From Amoebophrya sp. A120 (Eukaryota; Protista; Dinoflagellata), in assembly GCA_905178155.1 (NCBI GenBank), contig CAJINV010000001.1, positions 15,624,142 through 15,688,141 on the forward strand: a stretch of DNA of 64,000 bases, written 5' to 3'. The translations under genes and the position numbers were made by a program. A model generated the notes under the pieces. It was not told the origin of the DNA, did no database searches, and saw only the letters and a program-made list of their open reading frames with translations. This document shows, piece by piece, positions 10,413 to 57,107 of this stretch. Each line of letters begins with the position of its first letter. Position 1 is the first letter of the stretch.

Positions 10413-10436
10413 AACACTTCTTCATCCAACTGGTGG
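10390..10436. repeat. Perfect 21-bp inverted repeat with a 5-nt loop overlapping a stop codon
   Basis: ccaccagttggatgaagaagt-agaac-acttcttcatccaactggtgg; TAG at 10410-10412. Confidence 0.95.
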
Positions 10437-13331: not shown

Positions 13332-14302
13332 AAAAGTGAAGCAAGTACCACGTATAGTAGAAGAATGACAATGACGCTTATTTTCTCTGACTAGAAGATC
13401 ATCTTGATCTTTTGTTTTCGAAAGAGGACTGTAAAGTCACTGCGGAACAAGCGTTGGATTGAGCATTCACGTGCTGTAGCCGGTGGCGCATGGCCACACT
13501 TCTCCAGCTGCTGGTCTATTTCGCCTCGTTATCGCTGTCGCATAGTGATAGATGCGGATACCGACGACCCTTGTTCGAACTATCTCTCACAACTCTTGAT
13601 GTAGATCCGCAGCGCCACCGCATTAGGTACGAGCTGTCGCTTTCTGCTGGTGCAGTATTTACCTGTTACATACATGATCTTGATCAACTTCTGCTCAGCA
13701 AAAGCTTGCGTTTTTTGGAACTGACACAGCGTCGCCATCCGATCTTTTGTGTGAAAAAAACGATCATAATCATGATCAGATTCTTTCAGGCTCACAAAGG
13801 AAAGAACTCATGCTTATCCTCGCATTTATATGGGATGATGTCCTCGACCTGGTCCGGTCACTGCTGTGTTGGATCCTCTCGATCTCGTAAAGAACTATTC
13901 CGGGTCCGCTCCGGAAACGGAAATGAATTGAAGACGAAATGAGTAGAGCTAGAGGCTTTATTGACGTAAAGTTCCACCGTGCTGGTGAAGCTGATAGATT
14001 CATTGCACCCGCCTGTTGGTGGAGATCTTTTTGTATGTTGTGCCGATGAAGAATACTTAGCGTCAGCGTCTTTCGACGACCCTGCTCGATGTCGATTCTC
14101 CAACATAATTTCAGCGACAAAGATGACTCGTAGACTCTTGACCAACACGATGAACATATTTCGTTTTTAGTTAGAATCTGTTTCACTCAAGAACATCGAA
14201 GAAAGTGACCACGACTTCGTGCAGGAGTATATACGTATAAGCTGTTTTCCGCCACTGAAATAGAACTATACATCTACTAGCGACCTAGCCACAAAAGAGA
14301 AA

Positions 14303-15193: not shown

Positions 15194-16117
15194 AGCTTTT
15201 CATCCCATGATGTGGTGCGTGCAGTCAAAAGGACGAGGGCAAGAAGATGATGTCTACGTCAGGACGTAGGACGAGATGATGCGTGCTTATGTCATTACGC
15301 AGAAGGAAACAATGTCGACAGTACCTGTCTGTTTGTCCTTGCCAAGCAACAACCACAAAGTGAATGTGTACCAATCGAGGAGTCGCGTCGCGCTTTTTTT
15401 GAAATAGTTGAATGAAGTGACACAACCCACATCGTGCCTTGTGGTCCAAGACCAAGCATAAACGCACCCGGATTCGCGACGTCTCGGCTTTGATTCACTC
15501 AGAGTTAGTGCGCCGTGTTCGTGTTCCGCGTTAGAGTCAATTTCAAGTTGACCACACAGGGACAGGGATTCGCTCCATACAACACAGGCTTCGCACAGGA
15601 TGAGTTCCATTTCTCGTTCGCTTCTCCTTCTGTGTACCGACGTCGAGGACTTGAAACGAGAGAAGAACCTCACCAAAAGCAATAATAGCCCGTCTCTGCC
15701 ATTTTTCTTGATGCATCAACACCAATACTTTGTTTCGCCGTGCGTTGCACAAGAGCTTTGATGTAGTTCGACTAGTCGCTGAGCTAAAAGTTCGTACATT
15801 GGGCGGATTGTTTTGACTCTTTTTTTTTCCTCCGGGTAATCACTTTTCATACTTAATACGTCTCATTTTCTTACTTTGAACAAGAACTTTTATGTTGTTT
15901 CCTTTCAAGGAGCTTACTTACAAGCAATTCCCTCGACAGCGAGCCGAAAACCAATACCAAAACCGTGAAAGAATAAAGAAGGTCAAAGTAGACAGAGTTG
16001 GTTATACGACGTAAAACTAAAAGGTCAAGACGCTTTTGTTTGTTGTATCCCAAAAAAAATTCGGTTCCGAGTGTCAACCTTGTTCTGTGTTCAACTCTGC
16101 TCTTCGACTAAACAAAG

Positions 16118-38300: not shown

Positions 38301-39064
38301 TCCATTGCAAGCAAGTGCAGGGTACGAACGCCGACGCGACCACCTCTCAACAGACCTGCGTGGACAACTTCTTACCGCCCGCTAAGTGCCAGAGCCGTCT
38401 TTTCGAATTAGGTTCGCTGTTTGAGGAAATGTTCGCTTGCGAGTGCGGCGGCGACCTGGAAAAATTCGAAGTTCTGCTTCGTGGTTTATACGCGCGTTGT
38501 AGGGCTCCTCCTCCAGTAACAGGAAGTCATTCGCGTTCACTCCCACTGCAAGGAGCACCTCCGCCCGTTGTTCTGCCAGCGTGTTCTAACAAGTACACTA
38601 TCGCAGCAGGAACCGGTCCTCCAGGCGAACGCGGCACGATGGAACAACGACGTACAATAGGGCCTGCAACAAATGAAACATACCCTCGTGTGAAATTGCT
38701 GCAAAAAGCTGGCACCGAACACTTCCACCTTCCACATGCAGTCGTTGAAGGAGCATCTTCTCCACTACACGAGTCAGTCCACCTAGCACCGCCCGGAACT
38801 GCATCTGCTGCTATGCCTACTTGTGCAGCCGCCTCTCGGCGAAGCAATAATTCCATAACCGACCACGCATCGTATCCATTTTCGGACATTCGCAACGCCA
38901 CAGGTGTAGTTGATCCGGATCAGAAAACTTTGTCAGCATCCTCGTCCCGGTTATCACCACCTCCAAAACTAGCGGGGGCCCGATCAGGCCGCAACAGCCT
39001 TCGGTTTTTCGCATCCCCCCTGCAGCGCCGCAATTCAACATCGACCATAAATTCTTGTTTCTAA
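35354..39064 (+). CDS. Inward-rectifier (Kir)-like channel fused to a GST/CLIC-DHAR-like domain
   Basis: Two TM segments around THLVTMGPS; Kir cytoplasmic motifs IFSPVALITKRDG..FLIRVGNLR and HVVDESSPL; later C..AQVL...Y....V....KPAWF, TPML and FLYGDTPS resemble GST N and C domains. Confidence 0.75.
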   Translation: MTSTAPRPFQPPSRQLVSPFARKWEHLGFFGNVYFLLLDATFAQTIVFTITAYAFVCVFLIALTLPFVDDFVTANGTSAPDVVLAATGDEGDPASSTQNGASSGDVDFGVRLTVALRVVVTHLVTMGPSEFVPAPSLDWLFLFATLQQFAGIFCNVFLIAIVLRKVELPTPALIFSPVALITKRDGQLVFLIRVGNLRCNVIQRPEVELQLFTSALTQEGESRIRSQVMEAKTMPLMYSQCVVEHVVDESSPLFPFLLQYSDGEFQNLSKNELCVCVLFRGFDLTYYEDVWSNYKYTPADIVLARAGDMIWDDMIQAPDHAAAVPGSITGGAVLSASFSSVSIFAKKFVTPVLSTFLCRGGASASKGHQMHQNRPTIDFARIGSIVPAARKKKQKRRSCSSSRPRRFRQLDCALEGGPDADHTPSEDEDDDEASRADDPNGIQLSTYFTCAESKRVHSLVAERGTRKKEFPPLFALYLEQRERYFAAMRRPDRVPKVQKPTLAADQLLPDQLITEPSQYPDLTDGSLVYIFSGGKPGRLDLTRQQTKTNSCAGAFSTCSSSTAGQGHLLPKLCVAAQVLEVLLRTADISYQTIVVNFFEKPAWFEGEQEIPTEYLPKSQRHLGPLKFPPLGLTPMLYFEGRLRGEFADIVRYLLHRFADKFTDPARFAIPPVSHDPLGLRGLLLPNQRDAYLTLQDFADASRLPEPAPPPPPEVFKLELLKYHDLPVERKDEDKNYDEQQQELESAPHSTLAIPVLDFEQAVYIYTKLQYFFVLYIMNLGPLQQAHLREKRSAAAGAAERTVTDHTLEKAELEDPTLKGLAAQLRQTFQDFETAYESRRSESGNGEDEGAVADPIFLYGDTPSVIETVALTMIARYRDYMRYAFSSPATWKAVWNENEFPLLTKACEAANLMAAAQPHGAAFVNIGSYAALFLQQFCAKMGLPETDQRADVCAVEGIFSEYYKILNDVFGVMVLETTESEGELHCKQVQGTNADATTSQQTCVDNFLPPAKCQSRLFELGSLFEEMFACECGGDLEKFEVLLRGLYARCRAPPPVTGSHSRSLPLQGAPPPVVLPACSNKYTIAAGTGPPGERGTMEQRRTIGPATNETYPRVKLLQKAGTEHFHLPHAVVEGASSPLHESVHLAPPGTASAAMPTCAAASRRSNNSITDHASYPFSDIRNATGVVDPDQKTLSASSSRLSPPPKLAGARSGRNSLRFFASPLQRRNSTSTINSCF

Positions 39065-40295
39065 GTCAAAGTAAATATGACAAAAGAGTGCCGCAGTTGG
39101 ATAGAGTTGGACTCGCTCGGATCAAAACAAAATGACTATGATTTTCGTTTCGTTCATTTCCTGCATGCAACAGCGTAATCAATTTTCTATGAGTTTCGCC
39201 ATCCTTTCAGAAGTTGTTACAGAATCAGGTAACCAGGCAGTCCAATGGATGCCAATGCATTTTCGTTCGAAGCAGTTTGGCGTCTTTGTTCTCGGATCAC
39301 GATCATCGGTACTATCCAATAACTTCTACTTGTGACTTGTCTTGCCTCACTTTCATAGTCAATCTCAATCAATCCTGAGCACCAGTGTGAGGAGCCAATG
39401 GTATTCGGTTTCTTCTTCCACTAATGTCTATGTCCCCGACGAATAAGCGGCGCATACTCATGTCTATGTATATTCCATTGTGACTCGTCGATTTGCACAC
39501 ATCGGTCAGAAGAATTCGTGTGAGGCCAAGAAAGCCTTCCGAAACACGATCAATCTGCTTGCCTCGTGCGGTCACACAAAATCCAGATCAAAAGCCGTGG
39601 ACGAGACACAAATAATAAACGAAGAAATCAAAAATACAGATCGGCATTCATTTGTCATGGCCGTGCAGTGCGCCGGATGATATCCATAGCGCACTACCCC
39701 ATCCTAGATTTTATGCTATTCCACCTGCAGCTTCTGATGTTTTTTCTCTTAGGAGGGTACTTACATTACACTACAAGTTTCAAGTTCGTCGACATCACAG
39801 CACCGAAATACAGCTAGGGGGAGGCCGCTTTCGCTACAAGTGGTTCGGAACAATGCGGACTATGAACGCACTCTGAAGAAGAGTGTCTACGGTGATTTTG
39901 TTCTTGATTTGATTTATTTGAAAGCTTATCTCGCTCTTTTTGTTTACGAAGGAAACAAAAACAAATGTAAGTGCCCGGTCTTAGTGCCTCGCTCTCTTCA
40001 TCTTCATCGAATTTCTCCTCGAAACTTTATTTTACCTCCATCGATCGCAATCGCTTCACTTCGTGTATTTAGCCTTACACTTTCACATTTTGACTTTGCG
40101 AACCAAGTTCACGTTGTATTTAGCTCAGCGAAAGCGAAACCGATGACGGGCCACAGACTTCGGCCACGGTCTGCGCCTTCGATTTTCCGCGTTTGACGCA
40201 TGACGAGCGCCAGTGTCCGCGGAAAACGAACCACACGATTAATCGGCCCGGTTCTCCAGTACGCTTGTTAGGTACCACCTTCGTGGCTGAAGATA

Positions 40296-42192
40296 ATGGC
40301 TTCGTCCTCCAGCACAGCTCCCCCCAGAAGAAGTAGGTTCGACGCGAGTAAAAACGCCAACAAGACCGCCTCGCCATCTTCCCCCACCGACGAGCAATGT
40401 CGGCTCGCTGCGGACTATTCCCGATACTTCGAGGCTTTCAAAACCGCGGTCCCGACCCAAACCGCAAAACTCACCCTGGACAACCAAGCGACCCAAACCT
40501 GGGAGTATTACCGCCTCGGTGGCGAAGAGGATTTGAGTTTGAACCTGGACCCGGTGGTCTTTCTGCCGCCAGAATCCGCATCCTGCGACGTGTTTTTTCT
40601 GCAAATCGACGCGCTGGCTGCCAAGGGGTACAAGTGCATTTCCTGCCAGCACCCGCCCATCTGGACGATTGAAGAATTTGTCGCCGGGTTTGGTTTGTTT
40701 CTGGACCACATCCAGGCCCGTCGCTGCCACCTGTTTGGAGCTGGCCTCGGCGGATTCCTAGCACAGACCTACGCCGCCAGCTGTCCCAGACGCGTGGCCA
40801 GTTTGCTGCTATGTACAGAGGATTCTCTCCTTTGATTCTTTTTCTTGCGAAGTGCCTCTCCGACGGTGATATTTTAATGCGGGGGCAGTTTTGTTATTGT
40901 TTCGTCTTGAGCCGTTTGCTATTGTTTCGTCTTATAAAATTGAGCCGTTTGTTATTGTTTCGTCTCAATCGATCTCATCGTGTCAGATAAGTATGAAAAA
41001 ACGTTCTATCTATGAAATCGATGATCGCATTTGCGACGAGAAACCAAAAATACGAAAATAACCACAGGCAACACGTTTTGCGAGACCCCATACTCCGGCG
41101 TCGGTATGGGTGCCGGAATGGTGATCGGCATGTTGCCAAGCGCGACGCTGCGGAGCATTGTCTTGAAGAACCACATCTCCGCACTAGTCCACGAAGAGGA
41201 CGAGAGCAGCACGCGCGAAGACCCACATCTCGGGCCACTCATAAGGAAACGAAACTATCATCGCCGGATGGTGAAAGAAGTCGAGGCGTGGGTGGAGGGT
41301 ATAGTTTTTCTTCCTCTAGACTATGTGTCTTTGCTTTGCAGTGAATGTGAGAAAAGTTGCGGCTGCGTTAAAAGTAGGATCTACATCTACTTCTTGTCGT
41401 GCGAGGACTTACCATACTAAGAGCAAGATCAACATCAGACGTCAAAATAGAAATTTTTATTTTTATCTATAATTCTTTCCACCATCGATCTCCCAGGTAA
41501 TCTGACCCATTTAAGCCCGGAACTGCTGCAGAGCAAGGTAACTCTTGCTTATGCTGCAAGCACCCTACCGGAAGTGAAGATGTCAGACTACCGCGTGCTG
41601 ATAATCGAGTGCTTGGACCTCAAGGACCTGAACGAGCAGGCTGCCCAAGGCAGCGCGCAGCTGAAGGCACGGCATCCCTATGCGAAGCTGGCCGACCAGA
41701 AGACTGGCGGCTCCTACCCGTTTCTGTGCGCCCCCATGGAAACAACCATCTTCCTAGAAGTACACCTGCGCAACTGCGACTATTTCCCGCAATTCGACTC
41801 ACCGGGACCGAAGGTGCGCTTGTTTTCGCGTTAATAAATAATTTCACCTAATATTCAGTGTCAGATCCAGATGGTCTTGCACATGAGCATGACATTGACA
41901 ATCAGCTTCGCCATAGTTGTTACAGCCCCTCTGGCTACAAAACAACACTAACAGACACCACACAATGAATTTTCTTGGCAATGAATTGACTAACCGTAAC
42001 CACCTGCAGGTGAAACGCGCGCCAGACGATCTCGTGAGCGGCGCCGAGGTCTTTGTGCCGGATATGCCTGGAGGCGGCCCGCTGGCAATGTCACCTGCAG
42101 AGGTGGAGGCACCCGCCACACCACCCTCAATATCCAAGATCGAGAGCTCCATGTTGGAAAGCGTTCCAGAAAACGAGAGAAGACATCGCTGA
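40296..42192 (+). CDS. Maspardin (SPG21)-like alpha/beta hydrolase; GT-AG introns ~40813-41067, 41299-41496, 41814-42009
   Basis: PVVFLPP.SASCDVFFLQI, HLFGAGLGGFLAQ (no nucleophile Ser), LLLCNTF, KTGGSYPFL. Confidence 0.85.
40889..40965 (+). repeat. Three tandem copies of ~gtttgttattgtttcgtct in an intron
   Basis: Read directly from the sequence. Confidence 0.8.
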
Positions 42193-42486
42193 TCTATACA
42201 TAACTGTTGACATAACTTTAGCTCTATGTTGTTGTTGACCACGGTTGCGTACATTACGGTTGCCTTCTCCTCTGTCCCGTCCAAGAAGAAGGCAACCACG
42301 ACGACACATATCTAATTTCACGCGACACAATGCTCCCACGATCATGGATGATACATCATCTCGCGACAACACGACACGAAGGAAAAAGAAATAAAAAACA
42401 AACCAACGAGACTACGAGCGCCCTAGCTGAGGTTTAATCATATGAAAAATACCCAAAATATCTTCCGACTCTGATTAGTGTTTCAA

Positions 42487-42695
42487 TTTTTCTTCTCCCG
42501 TCCTTTCGAGATGAGAGCCATCTTGTGCGCTTTGCTTTACTTCGGTCATGAGAGGAGTTTTTTCTTGGAGTAAGTTCTAGGAATCAAAAATGAGTCGATC
42601 TTGCTTATCCCTGATCAGCGAGCGTGCTGCGTCTCTCCAGCTGAAATCAGCGGCCCTCAACGTGGCAACGAAGTGGTGTCACGGGCGAGAAACTC
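42487..42695. repeat. Split direct repeat B2 (209 bp)
   Basis: Matches 50140-50348 with 5 transition mismatches. Confidence 0.95.
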
Positions 42696-42941
42696 GAGCA
42701 CACATGTGTATACCGACAAGACGACGCAGCGCGAGCCGCAGTGTCATCCGTAGATAACGGCGGCCGTAGGATAAGTTCGAACAGACATGAAAATCATGTG
42801 GAGAGAAAGTGGTGCTGAAAGTCACAGCCAACCTCGGTGCGAGGCGAACAAATGTAAGTAGGATGCTCGAGCAGAGCGCTGTATCGGAGTCATGAAATGA
42901 AAAACAAACAGTGCACAAGCAAAAGCGTGTGAGTATGAAAA

Positions 42942-45248
42942 TCAAATGTAACGCTCAGAATCATCATCACAAAACTCAGACTGAAAAGTGACATCTTCTA
43001 ACTTCAAATCGGCAATGACACCAAATTTCTCATGGCTGCACATGTGCAGCAGATCCGGAAGGATTTTATCGACTATGTCTTGCGAGAACTCTTTCACAGA
43101 TGTGAAGAGATCGGGATGGAGTTTCAAAGTATGTTGTAAGAATTTTTCTCTGGTTCCAATGTCGGCAATGTTGCAGTCGGTCGGAACTCGGTCTGCCCAG
43201 GGGCACATGCAATGCATGGATGAAGTGCACCAGAAAAACAGCGCCACTTGCGCCATGTGCGGCTTCGGGGAGTTCATGCTCAGAGTGGCGCACTTGGCTG
43301 ACTCGTTGTCGATGGAAATGCGGAAAAACTTGTTCGCAAGTTGCTTTTCGAACTCGAACAAGGCCATGACGGTAGCGCACAGCTCCAAAAAAGAAATCGG
43401 GTGGCGGCGAAGTTTTTCTGGGATCTGCGACTCGTGAACTTTGCACCACCGCATGACTCGCTGCTTTCCGATAACCAAGACCGCGCAAAGGCGGCCAACT
43501 TTATGGTTAAAATTGGCATCGGTGTAGACCATGACGTTGTCAGCAGCCGGATCTTCAAATGCGGTTTTTTTCCTCATTTCCTTGTCGAGGATGGCCTTGA
43601 TATTGCCGAGGCAAGTAGCCAACTTCGGGTCGATGTGCGGCCCGTATTTTCGGTTTTCCGTGTTTATGAAGTTGGACAGCGGTTTCATGGTCGGGTTGTA
43701 TCTTCGCTCCACGAGCGACCCGAGGCAAAATAGAACTTTGCCATGAAGTTCAGCAGCTTGATCCAACGACATCTCCTGTGCGGCCAAGGCGGAATCGATC
43801 ATTCCTTTGATCGCCTGCTTGCGCGACAAGGCGATGAAGAGCTCCGGAGTATCGCCCGCCAAGTCGAACATGAGTCCTAGGACTTCAGCAAGTTGCTCAA
43901 GTTTGATCTTGTTGGGGTGGATACTAACGCTAATAACTTTGAATAAATGAAGTACACACTCGCGTCCTTTTCGTCCGAGTTCGTACGGAATCGGTGCTGG
44001 GAAGTCGTCGACGTAGACTTGGCACATGATGCCAATGTAGTAGATAATAAAACTTTTTAGTGCGTCACTAATTCTGACCCAGTCAACTACAGAGTGCACA
44101 TTTCCAAAAATTAAAGTATAGGCCTCGTTGAAGACCCATTCTAAAATGTCAGGATCGAAGTGCACAAAGCGATTAAATTTTCTGTGCTTCATCATCACTG
44201 CTATCACGTTGTAGGCTTTGTGGACGTCAATGACCAACATGAGCAGCTTCTGTAACTCGCCGCCTGCGGCTACGCGTCTTCTTTTCGGATGATCTGCACT
44301 GCTTTTGTACCCTGATTGGTCGCATTGCTTGTGGAAGTCCTGCGCGGGCTTCAAAAGAGAAGCAGGGATGGGAGTGCCGTTTTTGACGAAGTTGTCGAAG
44401 GCTTTTTCGAATTCAAGCTCCAGCGACCGTCCACGACGAATTACTCTTTTCGGCATGGCGATAATGTTGAGATCGCGGAGAGAACTGTCGTGGAGGATGG
44501 TGGCAGCGGCTAATACTTTTCCAGCGTCTGTCATCGGGACAGAACGCTCCAGCTTGCTCCGCTTGTTTTGTGGTACTGCAGGATCTATCATCCTAATCTT
44601 GTTTTTCTGCTCTATGGCGAAGCGGCGGAGTACGTGTTTCCACCCGGCCCGTTTCGCCTGCTCGTACGAAAGTCGTGGACCAATTCGCGCATGACGTAAT
44701 AATGGTTCTACAGCGCGTTCTGCTTCCGTTTGCTGATGAATTTCGCGAATATGCTCCTTGCTCCAATATTCCGGTGGAGAAGTGCCAGGACAAAAATTGT
44801 CAATGTTGGTAGGGAGCGGAGATTCGTCGACAGCTGGTCTTTTCCGGTAATGCGGGGGCCAGCACGGTGGAGCGCGGCAATCGTACATGCATTTCCCGCC
44901 CTTGATGAGGACTTCGTCTGCTGTGCTATCTTCGTGTTTTGATTTGGAAAGTGCAAGATGAAAGAAGCCTATGTTGTATTTGCCGTGAAAGTCCAAGATC
45001 TCCTGCTTCATCTTCGCTTTTAGACTGGTGTCTAAATCAACAGCAGCTGCAACGTCGCGGTCTATCGCGGCTATCGGATCACCGTCACGCAACTTCGACA
45101 AATCCGCGCTCAAGAGCTCCTCGTCCAATGGCGTGAAAGGAGACTTTTTCCTTACGTCGATGCTGATCCGCTGTCGCATAAGCTTGATCCTTTCCTCGTA
45201 CTTTCTCTCTTCCGCAGAGAAAGTGGATGACGAGGAAGAGGAAGCCAT
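42942..45248 (-). CDS. Reverse transcriptase-RNase H of the YR retrotransposon
   Basis: KIRMIDP, IDVHKAY, LIFG, YVDDF; RNase H motifs YTDA, FLEL, IDN, NIAD. Confidence 0.93.
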   Translation of the reverse strand: MASSSSSSTFSAEERKYEERIKLMRQRISIDVRKKSPFTPLDEELLSADLSKLRDGDPIAAIDRDVAAAVDLDTSLKAKMKQEILDFHGKYNIGFFHLALSKSKHEDSTADEVLIKGGKCMYDCRAPPCWPPHYRKRPAVDESPLPTNIDNFCPGTSPPEYWSKEHIREIHQQTEAERAVEPLLRHARIGPRLSYEQAKRAGWKHVLRRFAIEQKNKIRMIDPAVPQNKRSKLERSVPMTDAGKVLAAATILHDSSLRDLNIIAMPKRVIRRGRSLELEFEKAFDNFVKNGTPIPASLLKPAQDFHKQCDQSGYKSSADHPKRRRVAAGGELQKLLMLVIDVHKAYNVIAVMMKHRKFNRFVHFDPDILEWVFNEAYTLIFGNVHSVVDWVRISDALKSFIIYYIGIMCQVYVDDFPAPIPYELGRKGRECVLHLFKVISVSIHPNKIKLEQLAEVLGLMFDLAGDTPELFIALSRKQAIKGMIDSALAAQEMSLDQAAELHGKVLFCLGSLVERRYNPTMKPLSNFINTENRKYGPHIDPKLATCLGNIKAILDKEMRKKTAFEDPAADNVMVYTDANFNHKVGRLCAVLVIGKQRVMRWCKVHESQIPEKLRRHPISFLELCATVMALFEFEKQLANKFFRISIDNESAKCATLSMNSPKPHMAQVALFFWCTSSMHCMCPWADRVPTDCNIADIGTREKFLQHTLKLHPDLFTSVKEFSQDIVDKILPDLLHMCSHEKFGVIADLKLEDVTFQSEFCDDDSERYI

Positions 45249-46574
45249 GATGGGCTAAGCGCAGACTACAATGCTAAAGGCTATCTCTCTGCGTGCGTCG
45301 ATGATATGCAGCAGGAGGGCTCAAGATAGGCATAATTCTCACGAGTCAGCAAGTAAGTATAATCAAAAGGAAAAACTACTTCCCCGGCCCTGCCCGACCC
45401 CAGATCTTCCCACCGAAGAGACCGAGCGAGGAGATCGAGCGCAGCACAATCACGACCGAAATGAGTCTTGCTGACTTTTCAAATGGAAATAGCGAGCAAA
45501 CCGACCAGGTTTGCTAAGTTCGCGGATGTGCAAGTGCGGCAACATGTGCACACCGAGCGTGAGAATTCCGCAGCAGACAAAAATGATCTGCGAGCACGGC
45601 ACTGAGTCTTGCTGTTCGGAAATGCGAGTAGCAAGAGGCGCTTGTAAGTCCAAGCCGAGTATGATTTTCCCGTGTAAGACAAGCACCATGCTTGAATAAA
45701 ATGTGGATAGTTTGTCTATGGCTGCTTTGATAGTCGGCTCTGCGTCTGCGCAGCTACATGGAAGAGTAGAGCTTTGATGTTATCATCTTTCTTTTAACAA
45801 TGTAACTTGTGGAGCATATTTTTCCACTTTTATGCTAAACAAGCGCATCGCGACTTTCTGAAAATATGACATCTAAAAATTTTTTGACAGACTCACGACT
45901 GGAAGATGAAAATAAAATATTTCAAAACTTTTTCTTGTACGACAGAAGCGGATAAAGATGAGACGCGTTTTCATTATATTTGAGTAGCGTTTTTGCAGTC
46001 TTACTTTTGTGATTTTTTCAGACTTAAAAATTGTCGTGCGAAACATATGATTTTCATTTCTGTAGAAACACTGTGCGTCATCGCTTCAACTCGTCGTATT
46101 TGGCATGGTCCTCGGACAATCGCGACTCCGAAAAACTTGCTCGAGGCCTTCGGAAGTAAACTTGATTGTAGTGGCGAGGACGAAACCTGAGTGAGTATTT
46201 TCTTTAGCCCGGCATACCGGAGTTTGATGATGCATGAGTAACAGCATAGCGCATGGGAAACCAAGTGTCGTTTCTTTTTTAAAGATATGGAGAAAACTTT
46301 TCATGAGCAAGCAATGCTAAGTACTGAGCATCCGGATCTTGTAGAAGGACAAGTTGATGACTGTGATCACCGCTAAATTGCAGCACGAAGAGTGTTGCTG
46401 GTGATGCTGGAAACAAACTGGACCTGAGTGAGGAGATGGGAAATGATGCGCAAGTGATCGTCATGAAAGTTGTCAGAAGGAATTTCTTTTTGACCATGAT
46501 GATGTGCGCAAGTGAAAATGCTACAAAGTGTGTAGGCAGCACATGATGGTGAAGATACCTGCAGCAAGTCGAAA

Positions 46575-47943
46575 TTACTCGGACTCGCTGGACGAAGAAG
46601 AGCTGCTGGAAGACTCCTCCTTCCTCGTCTTCTTCGCCATCTTCTTGCGATCGCCCTTGGAATCCTTGTTGTCATCATCCTTCTTCCTCTTGGACTTGTC
46701 TTTTTTCTTCTGCTTCTTCTCACCGCCCTTGTAGTCGCCCTTATCGTTGATCCAAGAAAAATAATCGGTTTTCTTCAACAACGACTTCGCCATGTGGCTG
46801 CTGCGCACTGCGTCATAGTCTTTGCGACTGAGTTCGCTACGCTTGTAGGGATGCAAACCGTTGGAGCAGTAAGTCTTCCCCTTCTCCTTGTACTCCGAGT
46901 TGGAGCACGGAGTCATCTTGCAAAAATGCCAGCAAATCTTGGCGAACTCTTTTTTTACCGGATTTCGGCTGCTTCTTCATCGGCTTGCGACCACCGGCAT
47001 CATCACTGCTGTCGGAATCGACGGAACGGCAGCGCTTGGACGCGTTGGAGTCACCCATGAGCGCGCGAAAGGACGGCTTCTGGTTCAAATTGTAGGTCGT
47101 GTGCACCTGCGCCATGAGCTGACTGTACAAAAATCGCATGCTGTTGGGGTTGTTCGCGCCGAGGGTCAGAAACACATTGACGCGATCCTGGTAGATGGTG
47201 GGGGCACCATTCACAATGGTGTCAGCAGCGTGGCATTCCGCCACTAACAGTGCTTCAAAAAATTTTTCATGCACAATCACCAACCAGGCATCGCCATCAA
47301 TTTTCTCCGGACGCTCCGCCGCTTTCTCGTCGATGAACAAGCACAACTGCCCGGCTTCGATGGGGTTCAAAACTGCGCTCTCGCGACCGTTGACGGCCAA
47401 GTTGTGCAAGCACGTCTTCGGGCGGATGGGCTCCTTCTTACCGGACTGGTTCAAGATGGCGTGGGACTTGAGCTGGTACTTCACCTGCAAATTCTCCAGG
47501 GTGTGGACCGCGCGGTCCCTGATGGTGTTACTCACCAGGCGGAAACTTTCCACCATCAGCCTCTCGGACCGCGGAATAAAATCGGCGTTGCCATGTGCCG
47601 CCACCTCGGCTTCCAACAACGGCTCCTGATTGTGTTGGTTCGGGAAGGCCGGATTACCGGGGGCTACCATCTGGATGATGGGAACGCCAGCACCACCTGC
47701 GCCAGGGGCTGCCGCAGCAGGAGCAGGAGCTGGGCCCGGAGCTGGACCCGGAGCGGGCGCCGGGGCGGGACCCGGAGCTGGACCCGGCGCGGGACCCGGA
47801 GCAGGACCCGGCGCGGGCGCGGGTCCCGGAGCAGGAGCTGGTCCTGGGGCAGGAGCAGGTCCGGGGGCGGGGGCAGGACCCGCAACTGGGACACCACCGC
47901 CTCCGGCACCACCACCGGCAGCAACTGGATTGTTACCAGACAT
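46575..47943 (-). CDS. Gag-like ORF with a Pro/Gly/Ala repeat; C-terminal Cys/His finger and K/D/S tail lie in the +1 frame after an A7 run (46950-46956)
   Basis: ORF from MSGNNPV (47943). Dropping one A gives ...SGKKEFAKICWHFCKMTPCSNSEYKEKGKTYCSNGLHP..., continuing into ORF 46575-46916. The gag call rests on position and the finger. Confidence 0.6.
47700..47910 (-). repeat. Coding (GPAP/APGP)n repeat with varied synonymous codons
   Basis: GPAPAPGPAPAPGPAPAPGPAPGPAPG... in the gag-like ORF. Confidence 0.85.
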
Positions 47944-48362
47944 GACCGCAGCTTTTTCTTCTCTTGGAAAGTCGTAGAAGGAGTTTTTTGCAATCGCTCT
48001 TCTAAAATGTAGAATGTGTTTGCAATTTTTTGTGCGAGTAAAAATGGCACAAAGACAAACATAAATAAGTGGATACACAAAAAAGGAGCGCGGGATCTCG
48101 GACGACGGGCAGCAAAAGAAAGCTTTTGGAGAAATGGCGAAGTGACTCTCCTCTCGAAATCGTGTGGCTGCTAATTTAGCTGCTCACAAGAGAAAACGCT
48201 GTGTAAGAACACAACGAACGCTGCAACGAAAAACGGACGTGATAGACGTAGAAAAGTAGAGACAGAAAAATGTGTCTGTCAACCATGTCGTATAGGCTCC
48301 TTCGAATATTTTGGTTTTTTTGGAAGTGAGCGGACTGACTTCTGTCGGAAGAGAGTCTTTCT

Positions 48363-49970
48363 TTACGGGATAAAATCGAAGTCCTGGAGTTTTAGCTTTC
48401 TAAAGTCGTTTCCTCTTTGATAATACGTTTGCATCTCATCAGATTTCCACCTGAGACGAGCACCAATTCTGGCGTAAGGATTTTTCGTTTTCATAAGGTG
48501 GCGTAAACAGCCTACCCTCATATTGTGGGTTCTATTTGTCCCGTAGTATGCTACAAAGTCGCGCTGGAAATCTTCTTTCCACGAGTCCGCCGAATCCGCG
48601 AGCAATGGCAGCGTAGCGTGCGGACACAGATCTTTCAGCTCCGGGTGGTCGCAGAAGCATTTTGCAAACGCCTTTTTTATATAATTACTTTTGAGGATAT
48701 ATTTATTCATGTCCAGACAGAAAACTTCTGACGCCGGGCAGAAACTAAAGTCCCCCGTGAGTGGCACGTAGTAGCTCCTCGTATCCTTGGTCAGAAGTGC
48801 TTGCTCCTCGATGAGATTGTCATCTTCCGGGTCGGAATCCTCGCCAAGTTCGTAAATCTTCTTCTGCTGCGCGGCCGGTCGTGCACTTGAGCTCGAGGAA
48901 GATGATGACGAAGAGGAGGAACCAAATAGGTTCAAGCTGTCCCCACAACCGAATGAGATCTTGTTCATAAGCGTGTTGCGGCGTAGTCCAAATAGAAATC
49001 CGATGCTCGTTGCGGCACCCAAAAGCGGACTCGTGTTGAAAGTTTCGAGAATCTCGTCTAACATAATCGCCGGAGCTTGGGTGTGGGAGAAGTAGCCTTG
49101 TCTTTTTAACCTGTTCACAGTTTGATGTAAATAAGTTTTGTCGGCTGAAGAAAGTGCAGATCCTCCTTCTACGCACTCAAGTCGTGCTATGACGCTGAAG
49201 AGGTAATCGTCAGCCGTAAGGTGCAAGGACTTGTTCTCGCCGGTGCTGTTCACGAGGGCGGTGAGGAAGTTGATGGCATGCGATCGAGTCATTGGCCATG
49301 GCTTTCCAAGCCATCTGTAATGCACGCCGAGTTGAGCACATACTTGAAAGTAGAGACGGAGTCTACTATCCTCGGTCTGTTTTCCAGGACGTGCTTCGAT
49401 TTCAGCTCGTCTCTTTTCAAATTCTGGCTTATTTGCTATTAATGCAAAAGCTTGCATTTTCTTCTTAGATTCAACTACATCAGTTCTTGCGCTTTTGTAA
49501 GCTCGCATAGTCGCTGGGTTTCCCGCAATCTCTTTGAAGAAACCGGGCGGGGGCTTCCAGTCTTCCGTCAAAACTAAGGCCTTCTTGCCGAGGTAGTCTG
49601 ATGCTGGTAAAAGTTTCCCGTCGTCATCGAAGATGTAACTTTTCTTCTTCGAGCTGGAGTCAGCTGATGCTGGCGATGAAGTTGGGTCAACATGATGCAC
49701 GGGTACTGCTGGATCAGCTACGACTGGTTCTGCGAAGAAGTTCTTCTGAAGTCGCTCCATGTCCGCTTCTTGAAACTTCGCGGATAGTGCGTCAGCGGCT
49801 TTTGCCTTCTTGAGTTGGCGGCTGAACTCGGAACCGCTCATAAAACCGCTCCTCCTTAAAGATGTCAGTCTTCCTCCGACTGTAGATTGCGCGCGAACGT
49901 CCGCTGCTCTTTCGGCAGCTTTCGCGGAAATCTTCGCGTTCATCTCCGCTTCGAAATCAAAACCGTCCAT
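48363..49970 (-). CDS. Tyrosine recombinase of the retrotransposon (likely start MDGFDF; ORF open to 50174)
   Basis: FGLR (catalytic R), LCPH, THNMRVG (HxxR), RLRWKS...YY (W and catalytic Y). Confidence 0.88.
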   Translation of the reverse strand: MDGFDFEAEMNAKISAKAAERAADVRAQSTVGGRLTSLRRSGFMSGSEFSRQLKKAKAADALSAKFQEADMERLQKNFFAEPVVADPAVPVHHVDPTSSPASADSSSKKKSYIFDDDGKLLPASDYLGKKALVLTEDWKPPPGFFKEIAGNPATMRAYKSARTDVVESKKKMQAFALIANKPEFEKRRAEIEARPGKQTEDSRLRLYFQVCAQLGVHYRWLGKPWPMTRSHAINFLTALVNSTGENKSLHLTADDYLFSVIARLECVEGGSALSSADKTYLHQTVNRLKRQGYFSHTQAPAIMLDEILETFNTSPLLGAATSIGFLFGLRRNTLMNKISFGCGDSLNLFGSSSSSSSSSSSSARPAAQQKKIYELGEDSDPEDDNLIEEQALLTKDTRSYYVPLTGDFSFCPASEVFCLDMNKYILKSNYIKKAFAKCFCDHPELKDLCPHATLPLLADSADSWKEDFQRDFVAYYGTNRTHNMRVGCLRHLMKTKNPYARIGARLRWKSDEMQTYYQRGNDFRKLKLQDFDFIP

Positions 49971-50016
49971 CTTCCGCTGAAGGGAACTGGGAATCAAACC
50001 GCAGGAGAAGGGTGGG

Positions 50017-50348
50017 AGAAAACAGAAGTGTGCAGCAACTCGCGCTAAGTCAGCACGCTGCGGGAGTTTCCGAATGTCTGTGCCCAATCTCTTAGGATCT
50101 CTCGAAGAAAAACTCGTCGCCGTGGTTCTTTGCATTTGCTTTTTCTTCTCCCGTCCTTTCGAGATGAGAGCCATCTTGTACGTTTTGCTTTACTTCGGTC
50201 ATGAGAGGAGTTTTTTCTTGGAGTAAGTTCTAGGAATCAAAAATAAGTCGATCCTGCTTATCCCTGATCAGCGAGCGTGCTGCGTCTCTCCAGCTGAAAT
50301 CAGCGGCCCTCAACGTGGCAACGAAGTGATGTCACGGGCGAGAAACTC
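50017..50348. repeat. Internal A2/B1 junction (equivalent to a circle junction)
   Basis: A (50017-50142) and B (50140-50348) overlap by TTT. Confidence 0.95.
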
Positions 50349-50619
50349 TCGTCTCGTGCAAGTGCGCTCATCTCTCGAGGCGATGACCTGTGTATACCTC
50401 CCACCAGGTCGTGACTAGACGTAAAGTCTGAGGGCTATGCTCGACAGACTAGTCAAAGTATACACCAACAGGTCAACGACCACGAGAAAACAAAGAACGA
50501 GGTAGGGAACACCAAGTAGTGCTGTGAGAAGTGTCGCAAGCAAATGTATAGCCTGCTGTACAATAATGTGACAATTCACGTGCTCAGAGGGAGGCGATGC
50601 AAAACACCTTCATTCAAAT

Positions 50620-50745
50620 AGAAAACAGAAGTGTGCAGCAACTCGCGCTAAGTCAGCACGCTGCGGGAGTTTCCGAATGTCTGTGCCCAATCTCTTAGGA
50701 TCTCTCGAAGAAAAACTCGTCGCCGTGGTTCTTTGCATTTACTTT
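50620..50745. repeat. Split direct repeat A1 (126 bp)
   Basis: Identical to 50017-50142 except one g/a near the terminus. Confidence 0.95.
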
Positions 50746-51832
50746 CACCCATCAAAATCAAAGAAAAAGAAACTCGGATCGTCTTCTCTTTCTTTCTGGT
50801 CATAATATCTGGGTATGGTAGGTTCAAACTTGTCATAGATCCGATCTGGGATTTTCGTTCTTCATTCTCATCATGTTATTATCTCTAGAAAAATGATTCA
50901 GATTGAATTGGTGTCGGAACATCATCATCCATTCTGATTTCATTCATTTTGATTTGTTTCATGAATCTCTTCGAAGAAAATCATTCTTCTTGGTGTGTGT
51001 TTTTTATAATATTGAAAAATGATTCCAGAATTTTCTGTCTCGGAATCATTGAAATATTTTATTTAAAATCATATGTGGGAATGGAATTTTGGGTTCCAGG
51101 ATCTGGATTAATAATGGAAGAAAAATATCTTTGAAAATTTTCTCAGGATAGAGATGTGTGTGAAAAAATTTTGAAAAATTAATATTCGAAAATAATTCTG
51201 AAAAATTTTTCATGAACCCCCTCCCTCCGAATATTAAAAATATATTAAATTTTCAAAAATGACATTCATCTCATTCATATTTAGATTTTTTATTTTCTCC
51301 CGATATGATAAGATTACTTGAAATTTTCGAAAAATGAATGAAAAATCTGATTTCCATCATATTCCAAGAATATTGAAATTAAGAAATTTTCATTTTGAAA
51401 ATATCCGGAATGAATCCCATTCCAGAATCGATCCAGATTCCAGAGATGATGAAAGACAATTTCGGACCGGACAACAACGACAATTTGAGTCATACCCAGA
51501 CATGAGAAGAAAGAAAGAAAGAAATCGATCCAGATCCTGGAATCTATCCGATCTGAATAATTTTTTTATATATCATTCCTATTCGACCCATGATGATATT
51601 GAATTCGAAATCCCACATTTATATACATTGAAAATTTGGAATTAGAAGAATCAGAATTTGAATGAAATGAGGACTCATAATTGATCTGAATTCAGAGTTG
51701 GATAATAGGATTCTCGAATGTCAGATTGTATTTTCATTCATCTATCACCGAATTATCGATCACATTCCGAAGAGATTCTCTTCCTTAAGGATCGATAGAT
51801 TTCCATCTTCCTCTTCGGTGAGGAAAATAGGG
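50737..51832. other. AT-rich, GpC-free island at the convergent strand-switch region
   Basis: No GC dinucleotide found by manual scan between gc at 50735-36 and gc at 51833-34; roughly 30% G+C. Confidence 0.85.
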
Positions 51833-52043
51833 GCAATGCGCATGCTCTCACAATCGCAAATCGAAATCAATGGATGCCAGCGCGTCCAAACAAAGTGCGA
51901 TATTAAATGTTCCTCTGATTTCAATCATTATGTTCATTTGTTTGGTTTTGTTTCTCATCCTCTTCTTCCAGTTGCGCTAAAAAAGAGCATTCGCTAGATG
52001 TCGTGTGGGTGTGTGGGTCTGGGTGAATATCATTTTTTTTTCG

Positions 52044-55000
52044 TCATATGTCGGCTAAGTTTAGTTCCTGATCCTGTTCGGAAGCGGAACAAAGAAGTCT
52101 TCTTTTTTTAAGTGGCAAATAGTTGTAATTGAGTCGATGCAGCAGCCTCTTCTTGAATCGTACAAAACCAAGTTCCTCACCCGTCAAGGGACAGAATGAT
52201 CCTTCGGACAGAAAGTCAATGCCAACGGTCGCACTGCCGCAATTACTGTTCGAGGTACTGTGATGTGGTCCAGGCCCTCTTCTTCCTTCCACATCCAAAA
52301 AGAAGGGACCCTTGCGTTTCTGGAATTGCAAGTCCGAAACTCCCGCGGCTTGGAGAAATTGCGTTATGTTGTCCGTTTCGCCTCCATTTTCATAGTCAAG
52401 TGAAGAGGATGTGGATGATCTATCTTTGGAAAATTCCGTTCTGGTGTGTGTCATCTTCCTCGTCTTGTTTTCCAGTTGCCGCTGTCGTGTTTTGTGCTGT
52501 CTCGAGACGGGCGAGTCATCATCATCTTCATCCATTTCGATTTCCTCAAAAGTGTCCTCGTCGTCTTTTACAGCATCGAATTCTGACTCGCCCGCCATTT
52601 CAATTTCTTCTCCAGTTTCGTCCACAGAATTTTTGTAATTGTTCCGCAACTGACAAGCAGCGCCGGCGTACTTTTCGAGGAGTACTTATGGAACTGTCAG
52701 GATCGAAATCAACAAAATCGAAAAATTTGCAATGCATAAAATGTAGGGCATGTGTGGCCTGTGTTGGGGCGCCGGCAAATGAGACCGATTGCAAGCCTCT
52801 TTAGGGGAAGAATTCCTGCTGCCAGAGTAGCATGACAGGAGCAGCCTTCTTTGCCCAAACAGCGTGAGAGACTGGATTTGGGTGCTCCCGAAATTTGTCA
52901 TGCATACCCGACTGCGCCACTTCAAAAACCTTTGCACCGTCGCCGCAAGCAGCTTCGGACGCAGGAGATCCGAAATTTGTCATGCGCCACTTGGAAATTG
53001 AGGCTCCAACTGGTGTCGATTTTATGCATCACAAATTTTTCGACTTTGTCAATTTCGATTCTGACACCTCCATAGTACTAGGACTGCCCGCGGCATCTGC
53101 CGCATCTGGTCTCCGTGCTCCAGCGTGAGCGCAAACAAAGTGCGGGCGAGCTGAGAGCTGGGCCGACTCCGCGCAAGCTTTTCATCTGCGGTCTGCGCAA
53201 TGTAAGTGAGCAGGGCTTCCCGAAGGAACTGCGTGCTCAAAATCTTCTCCGCGCCAAACATGCTCGTCAGTGTCATCGCATCCAGCAGATTCAGCAACTG
53301 TCTGCTTGTGAATCCAAACAGGAGGGTAGCTCTTTCTGCCTGGTTCGCTTTGCCTTTCGTCGTCCGTCTGAGTTCTGTGTGGTCGGCCTCGGCGGTTGTC
53401 TTTACTGACGAGGACCGTGGACTAGTACTTGTAGTGTCGCTGGCATGTTGTGGACGTAGATTTGCAGTGGATGCAGACGATGTAAGTGTGCCCGAAAGCA
53501 GGTGGGGTACGAGCTCGTCGTAAAACAACGACCGCAGCTGCGTCTTGGCAGGACGAGGCGGGTAATCCCGCCCTCCTGGAAGACCATATCCATAGCGCTG
53601 CTCCGCATGCTCTTTCACTCCTGGTTCGACCTGCTCCTGCCTATACGTGAAGCCAAAGTCTCCCTGGCATCTGTTGAGCACTTTTTCGCGCACCCATTCC
53701 CGAAGCTCGCCTGTTTGCGTTTGCACATTCAGAACACCTCGCCCAAGCGGGCGATCGCGCTGAAAAGTTGCAGAAGCTTGCTTGTCATGATCCCCTATCT
53801 GCAAGATGTCGGAGGATGTGCTGGTGGGTGAGCCGTAGCCATGGAATGGCATCGCCTTGGTGACTGATTTATGTGAAGAAGGATAATCATACTGAAGGGG
53901 TATATGCCCAACCCGTGCACAAGCCGCAGCGAAAACACTCAAATGCAGCGGCGAGTGGTGGTCTAGTCGCGCTAAAATGCTTGCTCCAAGGCGATCCCAG
54001 ACGTATTCGGTAGAAAAGCAGGCCCATAACAGAAAAAAGAGTACTTATTTATGTAGTGCGTTTTTTGGCGCGACAGATCGAGCATTTATTCGTGACACAA
54101 TTTTACTATTTTTCTGGTACTACAGTTGTGCTTTTCTCGAGGATATCACGTCCTGTCCGCGGAGACCCATCCGCCCAAACGCGTACGCCAAGAGGATGAC
54201 AGACTTGTCACCCATTTTCGTGCGCTGTCGGAATTTCTTTTTCCAACACGGCTGTTGTCCCTTCGATATTCCATCTGCATCGTCCTGCAGGGACAAATCG
54301 GGACCAGAAAAATCGTGGAAGGGGTGCGGGATGCTTTTCTGCACGCGCTCCATGGCAAAACGCATCAGATACACGTGCCGGATTCGCAGTTTAGCGAAAC
54401 TGTACAACACTAGCGCCAGCGACTGGTCGGACAGTTTCCGTTCCCGCTTGATGCACAGAACAGCGAGGGTTTGCACCAACGAACGATGAAAGTGCTCGAA
54501 CTTGGCGAGCGTGACCGCCAAGCTCGCGATGTGACGGTCCGTGACCCAATAGGCGGGTTTCCAATTCTCGTTCAGCCGCTTGCGCTGGAGTTTCAGGCGT
54601 GCCGCTTCCAGGCGCGCCTCGGTTTTCACGACGGATTCTTTCGGCTTGTTTTTTCTATTTCTTGGTCGGGAAAAAGAAGAGGAAGAAGATGTGTCGCGGG
54701 GAGTTCCTCGAACTGTGCAAGTACTAGAAGAAGCATCTTTATTTTGCAGAGGCTCTGGGGTGGGAGGAAGACTATCTTCAACATTGCGATCCGCAGGAGC
54801 AAAAAGTTCCTCTACTCCAGCACTGAGTGCATGTGCAACTCCAACTACATCATCGGCTTCATGCGGCCGTATCACGTTGTTCTCACCACCCGCCGCAATT
54901 TTCAAGGACGTACCTGGCAAGGACATCATCTCCTGTTCGGCGCCTTCGGTCGGAGTGTCTTCTCCTTGGCCCTTCGTCTTTGTCAAAAGCTCAGCTTCGT

Positions 55001-57107
55001 CTTTCTTTATTTTCGTCCGCCTACGTCTTCGTCCAGCACGAAGAGAAATCGGATTTCGTTTCTTGGGCCGCAGCATAGTTTTGTCCAGGTAATTTAGCGT
55101 CGGCGCCAAGATTTGCCTCGGGTAAAAGCCAAACAGCGCCATTTCGTGCAGGAAGATGATCATGGACTGCGGTGCCATGAGGTGCATCTTCTCGGAATAC
55201 ACCTGGCAGACCAGCCGCAGGGTCCGTGCCCACATGAAGTCTTCGCTTTTCCGGCGGTCGCAGCACTTCAGCCGCCTTTTGCGGAGCAGGTAGACAATCC
55301 AGCACAAATCGTACTCGTTCCAGCTGCACGCCGAGCGCTGCATGTGGCGGAACATGCGGTAGAAGAACTTTTCCTTCACTCGCGCGTTGCACTTCGCCAT
55401 GCAGTACAACACCTATGAGAGAGCACAACTTCTCCTCCCCCACCCCCTCATTTGTATTGCATGAACAGCAATACAAACGCCAGCCCTTCTGGAGCCTGTG
55501 CATGACTATGACAAGTTCACCGGTAGAAGGTAGTACTGTTTGGCCTTCCGAAATTTGTCATGCAAACAGTGCCACAGGGCAGCAAATGGATTTGCGGTTT
55601 TGCATGACAATTGAGGGGGAGGGAGAGTTGTCGTTGTGCACTTTCATAACACCAGGCAAATCTGGGAGTGGGACAAGCTGGAGGTCCGGGTGCTCGGCAG
55701 CTGCAACACCGATTTCGACCCCACTTGGTGGCGGATCTGCTGTTTGCCGAAAACGGCCTTCTCCACCGCGCGCGCAACGACATTCCAAGCCGTGTTGCTG
55801 CGGTACTGCAAGCGCTGAAAGCTGGTTGCCGTGGACACCAGTTGCGCGGGGGACATCTTCTCCAAACTTTCCACCACCTCCTCCCGCAACTTCTGAAACC
55901 GCCGGTCCAGCTGGACCTCCCGCCCGTGCGCCGACATCGTGGACGAGGAGTAAAGCAGGTCCGCGGACGAATTTTGTACTCCGGCCACTTCGGAAGGAGA
56001 AGAACTAGAGGCGGTTCCATAGTTGTTCTCAAGGCCAGGAGAGCTTGATGTTGTCCTTGTTTCCGGCAGCATGATCCTTCGTCGCCTTTTTGCGTTGTGC
56101 AGCGCGACCGAGAGTTCCTGCAAAAGGTACACCTTCGTGGACACTTTTTCGTTGCTGGTGGTCCCGGTCGCGGCTCCCATCTGCTTCAGGACGTGCTGCA
56201 GCTTTTGCTCCGTGGTGCGGTCCTGAACCGGCGCGCGCTCCTCAAAGCACAAGGCGCCTCCAAAGTCGGAGGATTTGTACACTTGGGACGGGAAATCTTC
56301 AAAACCGGCAACATCTTCATCGGTGCTACTCTGTTGAGTGGTGACAGAAGCGGTTCTACTATCGCTGAAATGAGAACTAGCATGCTCGTCCACTATCAGT
56401 TTTATTCCGTCGTCATCATCTTGAACCTCATGTTCGCAAGGCACTTCGGAATTTTTGCCTCGGCGGGCGAAAGCGGCATCGCTTGTCGTGGTCATTCTGT
56501 GCGAGCCGGTAGTCACAGTCGGTCGCGTTCTACTCCTGCCGGTGCACCAGCTATCCTCGGTACTCCTGGCAGCTGAAAGCTTCCCTGAAATTGCGAAGCT
56601 GTTTCTACCAGAAAAAACAGCTTCCGCTTCGTGGTTTTCACCTTCGTCGAAAGCTTCGCTGTCGCTGTGTCGTTCACCAACATGCTCATTCCCCCTGCTG
56701 TTGAGAAAATCCGACAGGGTTGATAGTGAAGCTGAGTGCGGGTTTTCATGTTGACCACTCCGTTCCACAGCCGAAAGCGCCGCATCGCTGTCCGCGGCGA
56801 GAGCCGCTGGTTGTGAGGAAGAAGTACTAAACGTCCTTCTTCCTGCAGCACCACGGAGTGTTGAATTCGAAGTGTCATGCCCGCAACAGCTCCTGGAGGT
56901 TCCAGATGAAGAAGTAGCGCCGGAAGGAACTCCGTGAGATTGTGCCTGTTTGGCAAAACCGAGAGTCCAATGATGGTGGCTCAAAAGGGTCTGCGTCAAG
57001 GCTCTTGCTCCCGCGGGCGCCAGTACAGTTGAAGAGGAACTGGGTGTGGTCGTAACCAGCACCGACCGCGAAGTAGAACTTGAACTAGCACATGCAGCAC
57101 GCTGCAT
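52044..57107 (-). CDS. Large helical-repeat (HPR/OPR/FASTK-like) putative organellar RNA-binding protein; four exons separated by three introners
   Basis: Repeats such as MSPAQLVSTATSFQRL, LSHSQICLVLYCMAK, LSDQSLALVLYSFAKL, MGDKSVILLAYAFGRM; S/R/A-rich N-terminus. ORFs 55644-57107, 54120-55412, 53049-53942 and 52044-52649 join in frame. Confidence 0.65.
52687..53074 (-). mobile_element. TIR introner with ~56-bp TIRs
   Basis: tatggaactgtcaggatcgaaatcaacaaaatcgaaaaatttg vs rc tatggaggtgtcagaatcgaaattgacaaagtcgaaaaatttg; perfect GTACT duplication. Confidence 0.92.
54004..54145 (-). mobile_element. TIR introner
   Basis: tattcggtagaaaagca vs rc tatcctcgagaaaagca; flanks agacg/tcacg. Removing 147 nt gives GQDVWDRLG. 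Confidence 0.75.
55414..55648 (-). mobile_element. TIR introner that forms a canonical GT-AG intron
   Basis: tatgagagagcacaac vs rc tatgaaagtgcacaac; perfect ACACC duplication; on - strand ctg|gtgttatg...ctcatag|gtg. Confidence 0.88.

Follow-up and report, generated by a model that had tools for sequence, protein, structure and literature searches.

How the ends of the very long gene arrays on dinoflagellate chromosomes are defined is an open question, on which the evidence so far consists of an averaged GC dip and of 5-hmU at convergent boundaries. For Amoebophrya A120, the published assembly comprises 115.5 Mb and places 98.5% of genes in 516 co-oriented blocks (PMC7789003). The stretch of DNA analysed here, referred to as the window, covers 64,000 nucleotides of this genome (C1:15624142-15688141; contig C1 has 16.5 Mb and the genome 115,520,608 bases), and its non-canonical introns from repeated elements and co-oriented gene blocks are features fitting Amoebophrya A120. 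A first-pass annotation had pointed to a segment of about 1.1 kb that is free of GpC and lies where the gene blocks of the two strands converge. What kind of DNA is this, and is its composition a designed signal or the trace of a mutational process? If boundaries take the form of a discrete island obeying a simple dinucleotide rule, sequence alone would suffice to read them in any assembly. Such a rule would also point to a testable biochemical activity, namely purine-C-specific cytosine modification or deamination, and the island class would open boundary chromatin to study in a genome of only 115 Mb for which RNA and long-read data exist.

Composition of the island

By letter count, the run from 50737 to 51832 (1096 bp; A374 C171 G169 T382, 31.0% G+C) holds no GpC, against 26.3 expected from its base frequencies (Poisson P(0) ~3.6e-12), while 26 CpG, 34 GG and 39 CC lie within it. 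These counts bear out the first-pass claim of zero GpC in a segment in which CpG, GG and CC all occur. The last GpC before the run is at 50735-6 and the next one after it at 51833-4. Because the first nine bases of the run belong to a retroelement, we take the island proper to be 50746-51832 (Table 1). Its right edge is sharp, with 13 GpC in the next 200 bp. In the window the second-longest GpC-free run measures 179 bp, and 179 bp is also the maximum in another 200 kb of contig C1 (264 kb in total, used as background throughout). The window as a whole has 51% G+C, compared with 31% at the island, and a GpC observed/expected ratio (o/e) of 1.15.

The absence of GpC is part of a wider purine-C rule. 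Three steps are depleted in the island (o/e for AC 0.36-0.38, GT 0.44-0.45, GC 0) and others are raised (GA/TC 1.85-1.87, CC and GG 1.3-1.5, AT 1.25), with CpG at 0.98, CA/TG at ~1.05-1.11 and TA at 0.45. Put as a rule, a C persists only where a pyrimidine precedes it and a G only where a purine follows, on both strands alike. The first-pass annotation was right that GA/TC and AT steps are high; its remark that GT and AC are not enriched understated the case, both being depleted (0.44 and 0.38). Low G+C alone is ruled out as the cause, as other AT-rich segments in the 264 kb (36-42% G+C) have normal values for GpC (1.13), AC (0.98) and GT (0.94).

Authenticity and local gene context

Whether reads support the segment, a point that the first-pass annotation had left for checking, is answered by an independently assembled 2005-nt contig of a DNA run, which spans 50711-52715 with 0 differences at a contig depth of 26.5 over the island and 25.7 in unique flanks; the run is possibly from the same culture as the assembly, so that it confirms the sequence and does not stand for a second strain. 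Being identical in an independent contig at single-copy depth, the island is neither an assembly artefact nor a high-copy repeat, and in a BLAST search of its own genome only a block of 75-85 bp finds matches elsewhere. The Rfam search of the island gave no match reaching the gathering score, the tRNA search of 39000-54000, which includes the island, found none, the Pfam search of its four ORFs (59-103 aa) returned no match, and no conserved RNA fold was found in the ~85-bp block. These results rule out an organellar insert, an RNA gene and coding sequence. A tandem or satellite origin is likewise ruled out, trivial short arrays being the only ones present.

Open reading frames together with a 5-mer strand score, trained on a separate 200 kb of the same contig, place the window on the + strand up to ~39 kb and on the - strand from 52 kb. 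A DIRS-like YR retroelement stands at or near the left edge of the island; it is young, with repeats 98-99% identical, and single-copy at the DNA level. The first-pass annotation had the element split the island. The GpC-free state of the 59 bp on the element's far side, at 32% G+C, is confirmed, but the splitting is a weak claim resting on those 59 bp, which carry no statistical weight because only ~1.5 GpC would be expected there. Insertion of the element at the island edge fits the data as well. The 413-aa ORF of the element contains a 12-nt periodic GC-rich repeat (47696-47889; GGAGCxGGxCCC type, 11 overlapping units).

To the right, RNA contig coverage of the last minus-strand gene reaches 51947, ~115 bp short of the island, and no RNA contigs lie on the island itself, bearing in mind that contigs cannot prove silence or define exact 3′ ends. 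This gene contains a 393-nt non-canonical intron (52681-53073) that is spliced out in the RNA contig and ends in AG..AT on the + strand. With a summed DNA contig depth of 5,000-16,000, it is a very high-copy introner-type element, and a related copy occurs in the 200-kb stretch, in the region of locus L034. A second segment of very high depth (55319-55712; ~2,000-9,000, with several alternative contig joints) spans the transition between two minus-strand ORFs (54120-55412 and 55644-57107), and is probably another repeated intron element. At L034 itself (C1:15538003-15539893), within the co-directional + block, there is a tandem array of ~12 units of 154 bp that are 92-98% identical.

Table 1. 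Features at the island and in its surroundings (window positions), and genomic loci matching enzyme families considered in the text
Feature	Position	Strand	Description
Possible left island remnant	42428..42486		59 bp, 32% G+C, 0 GpC; an RNA contig covers it and continues into the element
DIRS-like YR retroelement	42487..50745	-	Split terminal repeats 42487-42695 = 50140-50348 and 50017-50142 = 50620-50745
Last 9 bp of retroelement	50737..50745	-	Counted in the GpC-free run
Island proper	50746..51832		1087 bp, 31% G+C, 0 GpC; AC 0.36, GT 0.45, TC/GA 1.86, CpG 0.98
Inverted, more decayed block copy	50778..50880	-	CTTTCTTTC terminus faces left
Most AT-rich core	50890..51435		23-25% G+C; not homologous to other islands, whether in the full or in a purine/pyrimidine alphabet
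Conserved ~85-bp block copy	51436..51524	+	80-91% identical to copies at other islands
GpC-normal spacer	51833..51946		Separates the island from the RNA contig coverage of the last gene
Last gene of minus-strand block	51947..53942	-	Exons 53942-53074 and 52680-52044; stop near 52044
C5 methyltransferase loci	C4:6810968-6812596, C19:1066489-1068073, C2:12619844-12620788, C11:3217101-3218522, C2:4290139-4291509, C12:2593136-2593288		
Weak Tet_JBP-like ORFs	C1:13511038-13511472, C9:385277-385516		799 and 1438 aa

Sister islands and a conserved block

In the BLAST search of its own genome, the island recurs elsewhere only over ~75-85 bp (51436-51524; a second copy, inverted and decayed, lies near 50778-50880). 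The two inverted copies, with outward CTTTCTTTC/GAAAGAAAG termini, enclose ~750 bp, and the 85-bp consensus of the block ends in GAAAGAAAGAAAG. In the window copy at 51436-51524, ApC stands in place of each of the two GpC of the family consensus. A 22-nt core of the block yields 45 copies at ~33 loci, compared with 2 for a reversed control; 8 of these loci are on C1, 5 on C2 and 6 on C3. A search of the rest of the window and of the 200-kb array found no block, and at every block locus recovered there is likewise an AT-rich stretch, in which GpC-free runs measure 155-755 bp.

At least 14 other islands of 0.7-1.9 kb and 30-37% G+C carry the same signature, giving a sample of 15 islands. Across the 14 sister islands, o/e values are 0.27-0.60 for AC, 0.39-0.67 for GT and 0.31-0.85 for GC, with GA/TC at 1.4-2.0, AT at 1.0-1.36 and TA at 0.40-0.67. 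Each island has 1-3 block copies in either orientation, similarity among some copies reaches ~200 bp, and no target-site duplication was seen at the copies. Outside the block regions, no homology above control was found between islands even in a purine/pyrimidine (transition-collapsed) alphabet, and the core and right 300 bp of the window island are without homology to other islands. Across the 15 islands there is no purine/pyrimidine mirror asymmetry, no 10-bp periodicity and, except for the block, no k-mer enrichment beyond dinucleotides. Enrichment of palindromes or restriction sites was rejected too, GATC being under-represented and TCGA occurring as expected from the dinucleotides.

The block may be a binding site for a protein, or else a small mobile element that seeks out islands; a viral origin found no match in viral contigs. 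The exact block core with ~600 bp of island-type DNA was also found on a 34-kb contig of another assembly from a metagenome collection (JACKZZ010011081.1), which is not identical to any genome locus recovered. At C22:424392-427475, three island-type segments occur in 3 kb with GC-normal DNA between them, forming a larger composite island with two block copies ~1.07 kb apart.

Position at convergent boundaries

The first-pass annotation had placed the island exactly at a convergent strand switch, and this holds for the window, with + genes to the left and - genes to the right; convergent flanks are also enriched among the sister islands. Among the 11 islands whose flanks could be tested, 7 are convergent, 4 are minus/minus and none is divergent. 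Flanks of ~1.5 kb on each side of the sister islands were scored, with a classifier that assigned 44 of 51 held-out 1-kb window pieces correctly (~86%); relative to placement inside arrays, where ~12% would be expected to appear convergent by error, the binomial probability is ~7e-5. Some flanks of the ambiguous islands are transposons, as in the window itself. At one sister island, a + strand host gene with a TMEM65 domain ends ~100 bp before the island. An island caller run over the 200 kb of the adjoining co-directional + array found none, and in the window it found only 50746-51832. The view that the island is a spacer where two co-oriented gene blocks converge is thus supported.

Related observations exist for core dinoflagellates. 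In Symbiodinium, a GC dip of ~10% occurs only at convergent boundaries (PMC8110479), and in Breviolum many convergent boundaries have 5-hmU and low accessibility, with no sequence motif for 5-hmU (PMC11071213).

It had further been suggested that the YR retrotransposon targets the island. This is not supported: the element is single-copy, and of its ~28 protein-level relatives none lies within 100 kb of a block-bearing island. Other types of transposable element also abut islands.

A local, context-dependent C-to-T bias

Three sets of related sequences allow changes to be compared by context. In 19 aligned copies of the block, T stands at a consensus C (strand-symmetrised) with a frequency of 0.25 for GpC, 0.155 for ApC, 0.093 for TpC and 0.045 for CpC, and the reverse change from T to C has a frequency of 1-5%. 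The comparison of C after a purine (RpC) with C after a pyrimidine (YpC) gives an odds ratio of 2.8 (p 9e-5), in a small test of 10 RpC sites. In two pairs of dispersed repeats beside islands, C/T differences affect 13.9% of RpC and 5.1% of YpC sites (odds ratio 3.0, p 2.7e-5), polarity being assigned with one partner standing in for the family consensus. Seven control repeat pairs of similar divergence within co-directional arrays show 15.1% and 15.9% respectively (odds ratio 0.94, p 0.81). All of these Fisher tests overstate independence because aligned copies are related. Since control repeats inside the arrays are unbiased, the RpC bias is local and not the general spectrum of the genome, and a genome-wide mutational bias is ruled out as the cause.

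The two repeat families beside the islands (L004:338-1205/L011:512-1384 and L002:2189-2883/L016:2402-3068) are unrelated to each other, GC-rich and without a Pfam domain. Each numbers at least 13-14 copies in the genome, of which most are far from islands and some adjoin them; in both cases, the copies on the island side have diverged more from their family. The island-abutting copy at L004 carries 27 of the 33 RpC changes, which are most frequent in the 200 bp bordering the island. In the third set, the duplicates within the YR element, 4 of 6 differences are of RpC type with T/A in the island-proximal copy. One of them extends the GpC-free run into the retroelement by a G>A change: position 50741 of the terminal copy is A, while the internal duplicate at 50138 has the G of a GpC. 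With such small numbers, the differences between the YR duplicates are only suggestive of the RpC process.

A simulation that changes C to T only at RpC, on both strands of ordinary genome DNA until 31% G+C is reached, correlates with the observed table of 16 dinucleotides at r = 0.92. It also reproduces the raised CC/GG, the lowered AG/CT and the unchanged CpG, whereas a context-free simulation of C>T gives r = -0.18. Misfits of the RpC simulation are TA (0.86 compared with 0.45 observed), AA/TT (0.82 compared with 1.1) and an over-predicted AT. The logic of the substitution agrees with the island table, as C>T at purine-C makes GC, AC and GT decay to AT while TC, CC, GA, GG and CpG of the YCGR type survive. 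The first-pass annotation had read the GT and AC steps as an argument against mutational decay. This argument fails because GT and AC are themselves substrates of the purine-C rule, and RpC-biased C>T in repeat copies is confined to islands and their edges.

Proposed mechanism and alternative explanations

The composition of the island is best explained as a mutational scar rather than a designed signal. Our main reading, with a probability of roughly 0.6, is that the island is a convergent boundary spacer shaped by a local, strand-symmetric hypermutation of RpC to RpT. The process would be limited to boundaries and ~1 kb around them, and would turn any C preceded by a purine into T on either strand; GpC, being struck from both, would be the first step to vanish. 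We suppose that the boundary is kept in a special state of chromatin or modification, as dinoTAD boundaries of core dinoflagellates are, and that this state would recruit or permit deamination, either directly or after methylation. The spacer would then serve as a zone of termination and insulation and as a tolerated landing place for transposons.

A candidate route is non-CpG cytosine methylation by a homologue of C5-methyltransferases followed by deamination, and an alternative candidate is a RID-like or other deaminase activity. Matches to C5 DNA methyltransferase above the Pfam cut-off occur at 5-6 loci in the genome (Table 1), and the APOBEC_N profile (PF08210) has no match in it. Tet_JBP gives sub-threshold matches only, at 30.9 and 25.9 bits with a cut-off of 34.9, and the two weak ORFs are candidates for divergent thymine or cytosine dioxygenases. 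Judged by these profile matches, no enzyme with a putative RpC specificity was identified among the results for C5-methyltransferase, Tet_JBP and APOBEC_N. A broader proposition, to which we give somewhat less than an even chance, is that in syndinian dinoflagellates a boundary-restricted, strand-symmetric and 5′-purine-specific hypermutation or modification marks every convergent boundary and carves GpC-free islands. If true, the islands would be a sequence-readable map of dinoTAD-type boundaries, and the process would be the first RIP-like one in alveolates, with a new context rule.

The same composition could have arisen as a selected code, if a boundary needs DNA that is rich in TpC/GpA and ApT and free of purine-C and selection excludes GpC, either because the DNA is a dense substrate for thymine hydroxylation (5-hmU, base-J-like) or because it is read by a boundary or termination protein. 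The convergent position, the sharp right edge and the 85-bp block common to the islands agree with this, and 5-hmU is enriched at convergent boundaries in Breviolum (PMC11071213); an older report, as cited in PMC11572971, describes for C. cohnii a preference of 5-hmU for replacing the T of TA and TC. Because of this literature on 5-hmU and the G+C drop at core dinoflagellate boundaries, a TpC-rich substrate for thymine modification stays among the rivals. We nevertheless consider a selected code unlikely: RpC-biased changes of the same kind are found in transposon copies that are neutral, GC-rich and simply adjacent to islands, the islands are not homologous outside the block even in the purine/pyrimidine alphabet, and the mirror asymmetry, periodicity or k-mer enrichment that a code might show is absent apart from the block. 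The lack of a 5-hmU sequence motif in Breviolum (PMC11071213) and the sub-threshold Tet_JBP scores also weigh against it. Of the 'sequence-encoded boundary' proposed by the first-pass annotation, a role in boundary formation or termination is therefore plausible by position, but design is less likely than a mutational scar.

The bias might instead be inherited: an AT-rich TIR/MITE-like element, inserting into itself, would have left the island as a nest of copies that then decayed, and it would be the element's own composition that we read. Two inverted block copies with outward termini bracketing ~750 bp look like such an element, as do the 1-3 copies per island in either orientation with similarity of up to ~200 bp among some. 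We hold this to be distinctly unlikely, since only 85-200 bp are homologous between islands and neither the core nor the right 300 bp is, the block consensus holds GpC and ApC that individual copies have lost, target-site duplications were not seen, and unrelated transposons beside islands have the same bias. Still less probable is a replication-related AT island, either a fission-yeast-like origin or a zone of fork convergence, with the composition as a by-product. AT-rich island origins of S. pombe are of similar size and AT content, and, should divergent switches house the origins, the space between blocks would be a fitting place for replication to terminate. If a convergent site were itself an origin, however, head-on collisions would follow on both sides, and the purine-C rule would go unexplained. 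The first-pass annotation had also raised a centromere, in the manner of the short AT-rich islands of Plasmodium or diatoms, and a short, AT-rich, transposon-flanked segment free of RNA contigs resembles one. With at least 14 sister islands and the block at ~33 loci, 8 of them on C1 alone, a single centromere is excluded, and a centromeric nature of any kind is highly improbable.

Comparison with known systems

Kinetoplastid convergent strand-switch regions, with base J and H3.V, resemble the island in that polycistron-like blocks meet at a short untranscribed zone and a modified-thymine pathway is a candidate. They differ in that the island area (39000-54000) has no tRNA gene and that no clear JBP homologue was found in the genome, and we know of no comparable dinucleotide signature in kinetoplastid regions. 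AID-type deamination at WRC hotspots shares the preference for C after a purine and the sparing of pyrimidine-C, in line with the odds ratios of 2.8 and 3.0 at the islands. Unlike AID-type action, that at the islands is strand-symmetric and regional, the genome has no APOBEC_N (PF08210) match, and transcription-linked single-stranded DNA is not evident at an island without RNA contigs.

Fungal RIP also produces sharply bounded AT-rich blocks by two-strand C>T, matching transposon-rich silent DNA, with leakage into neighbouring sequence and with DNMT-like genes in the genome. Its context is different, in that RIP reads the 3′ neighbour (CpA to TpA) and raises TpA, whereas the islands follow the 5′ purine and have a TpA of 0.45. 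Multi-copy repeats within gene arrays are unaffected and the high-copy intron elements have normal composition; as array repeats carry no RpC bias, duplication is not the trigger. RIP of the fungal type is ruled out by the different context, the low TpA and the absence of a duplication trigger.

The closest likeness is to the dinoTAD boundaries of Symbiodinium microadriaticum and Breviolum minutum, where unidirectional blocks converge, local G+C falls only at convergent sites, transposons are enriched nearby and there is little or no transcription. Those boundaries are known as averaged G+C dips of ~5-10% at 10-kb resolution, while the Amoebophrya island is a discrete 1-kb segment, 20 points lower in G+C, with a strict rule against purine-C, and its class is further set apart by an 85-bp block in common and by evidence of C>T that is local and context-specific. 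Our literature search found no report of a purine-C-depleted island signature, of the shared block or of a boundary-restricted C>T process. A GC-poor convergent array boundary is thus of a known kind; new are its form as a discrete island and the purine-C rule, as well as the shared block and the evidence for boundary-restricted, context-specific C>T.
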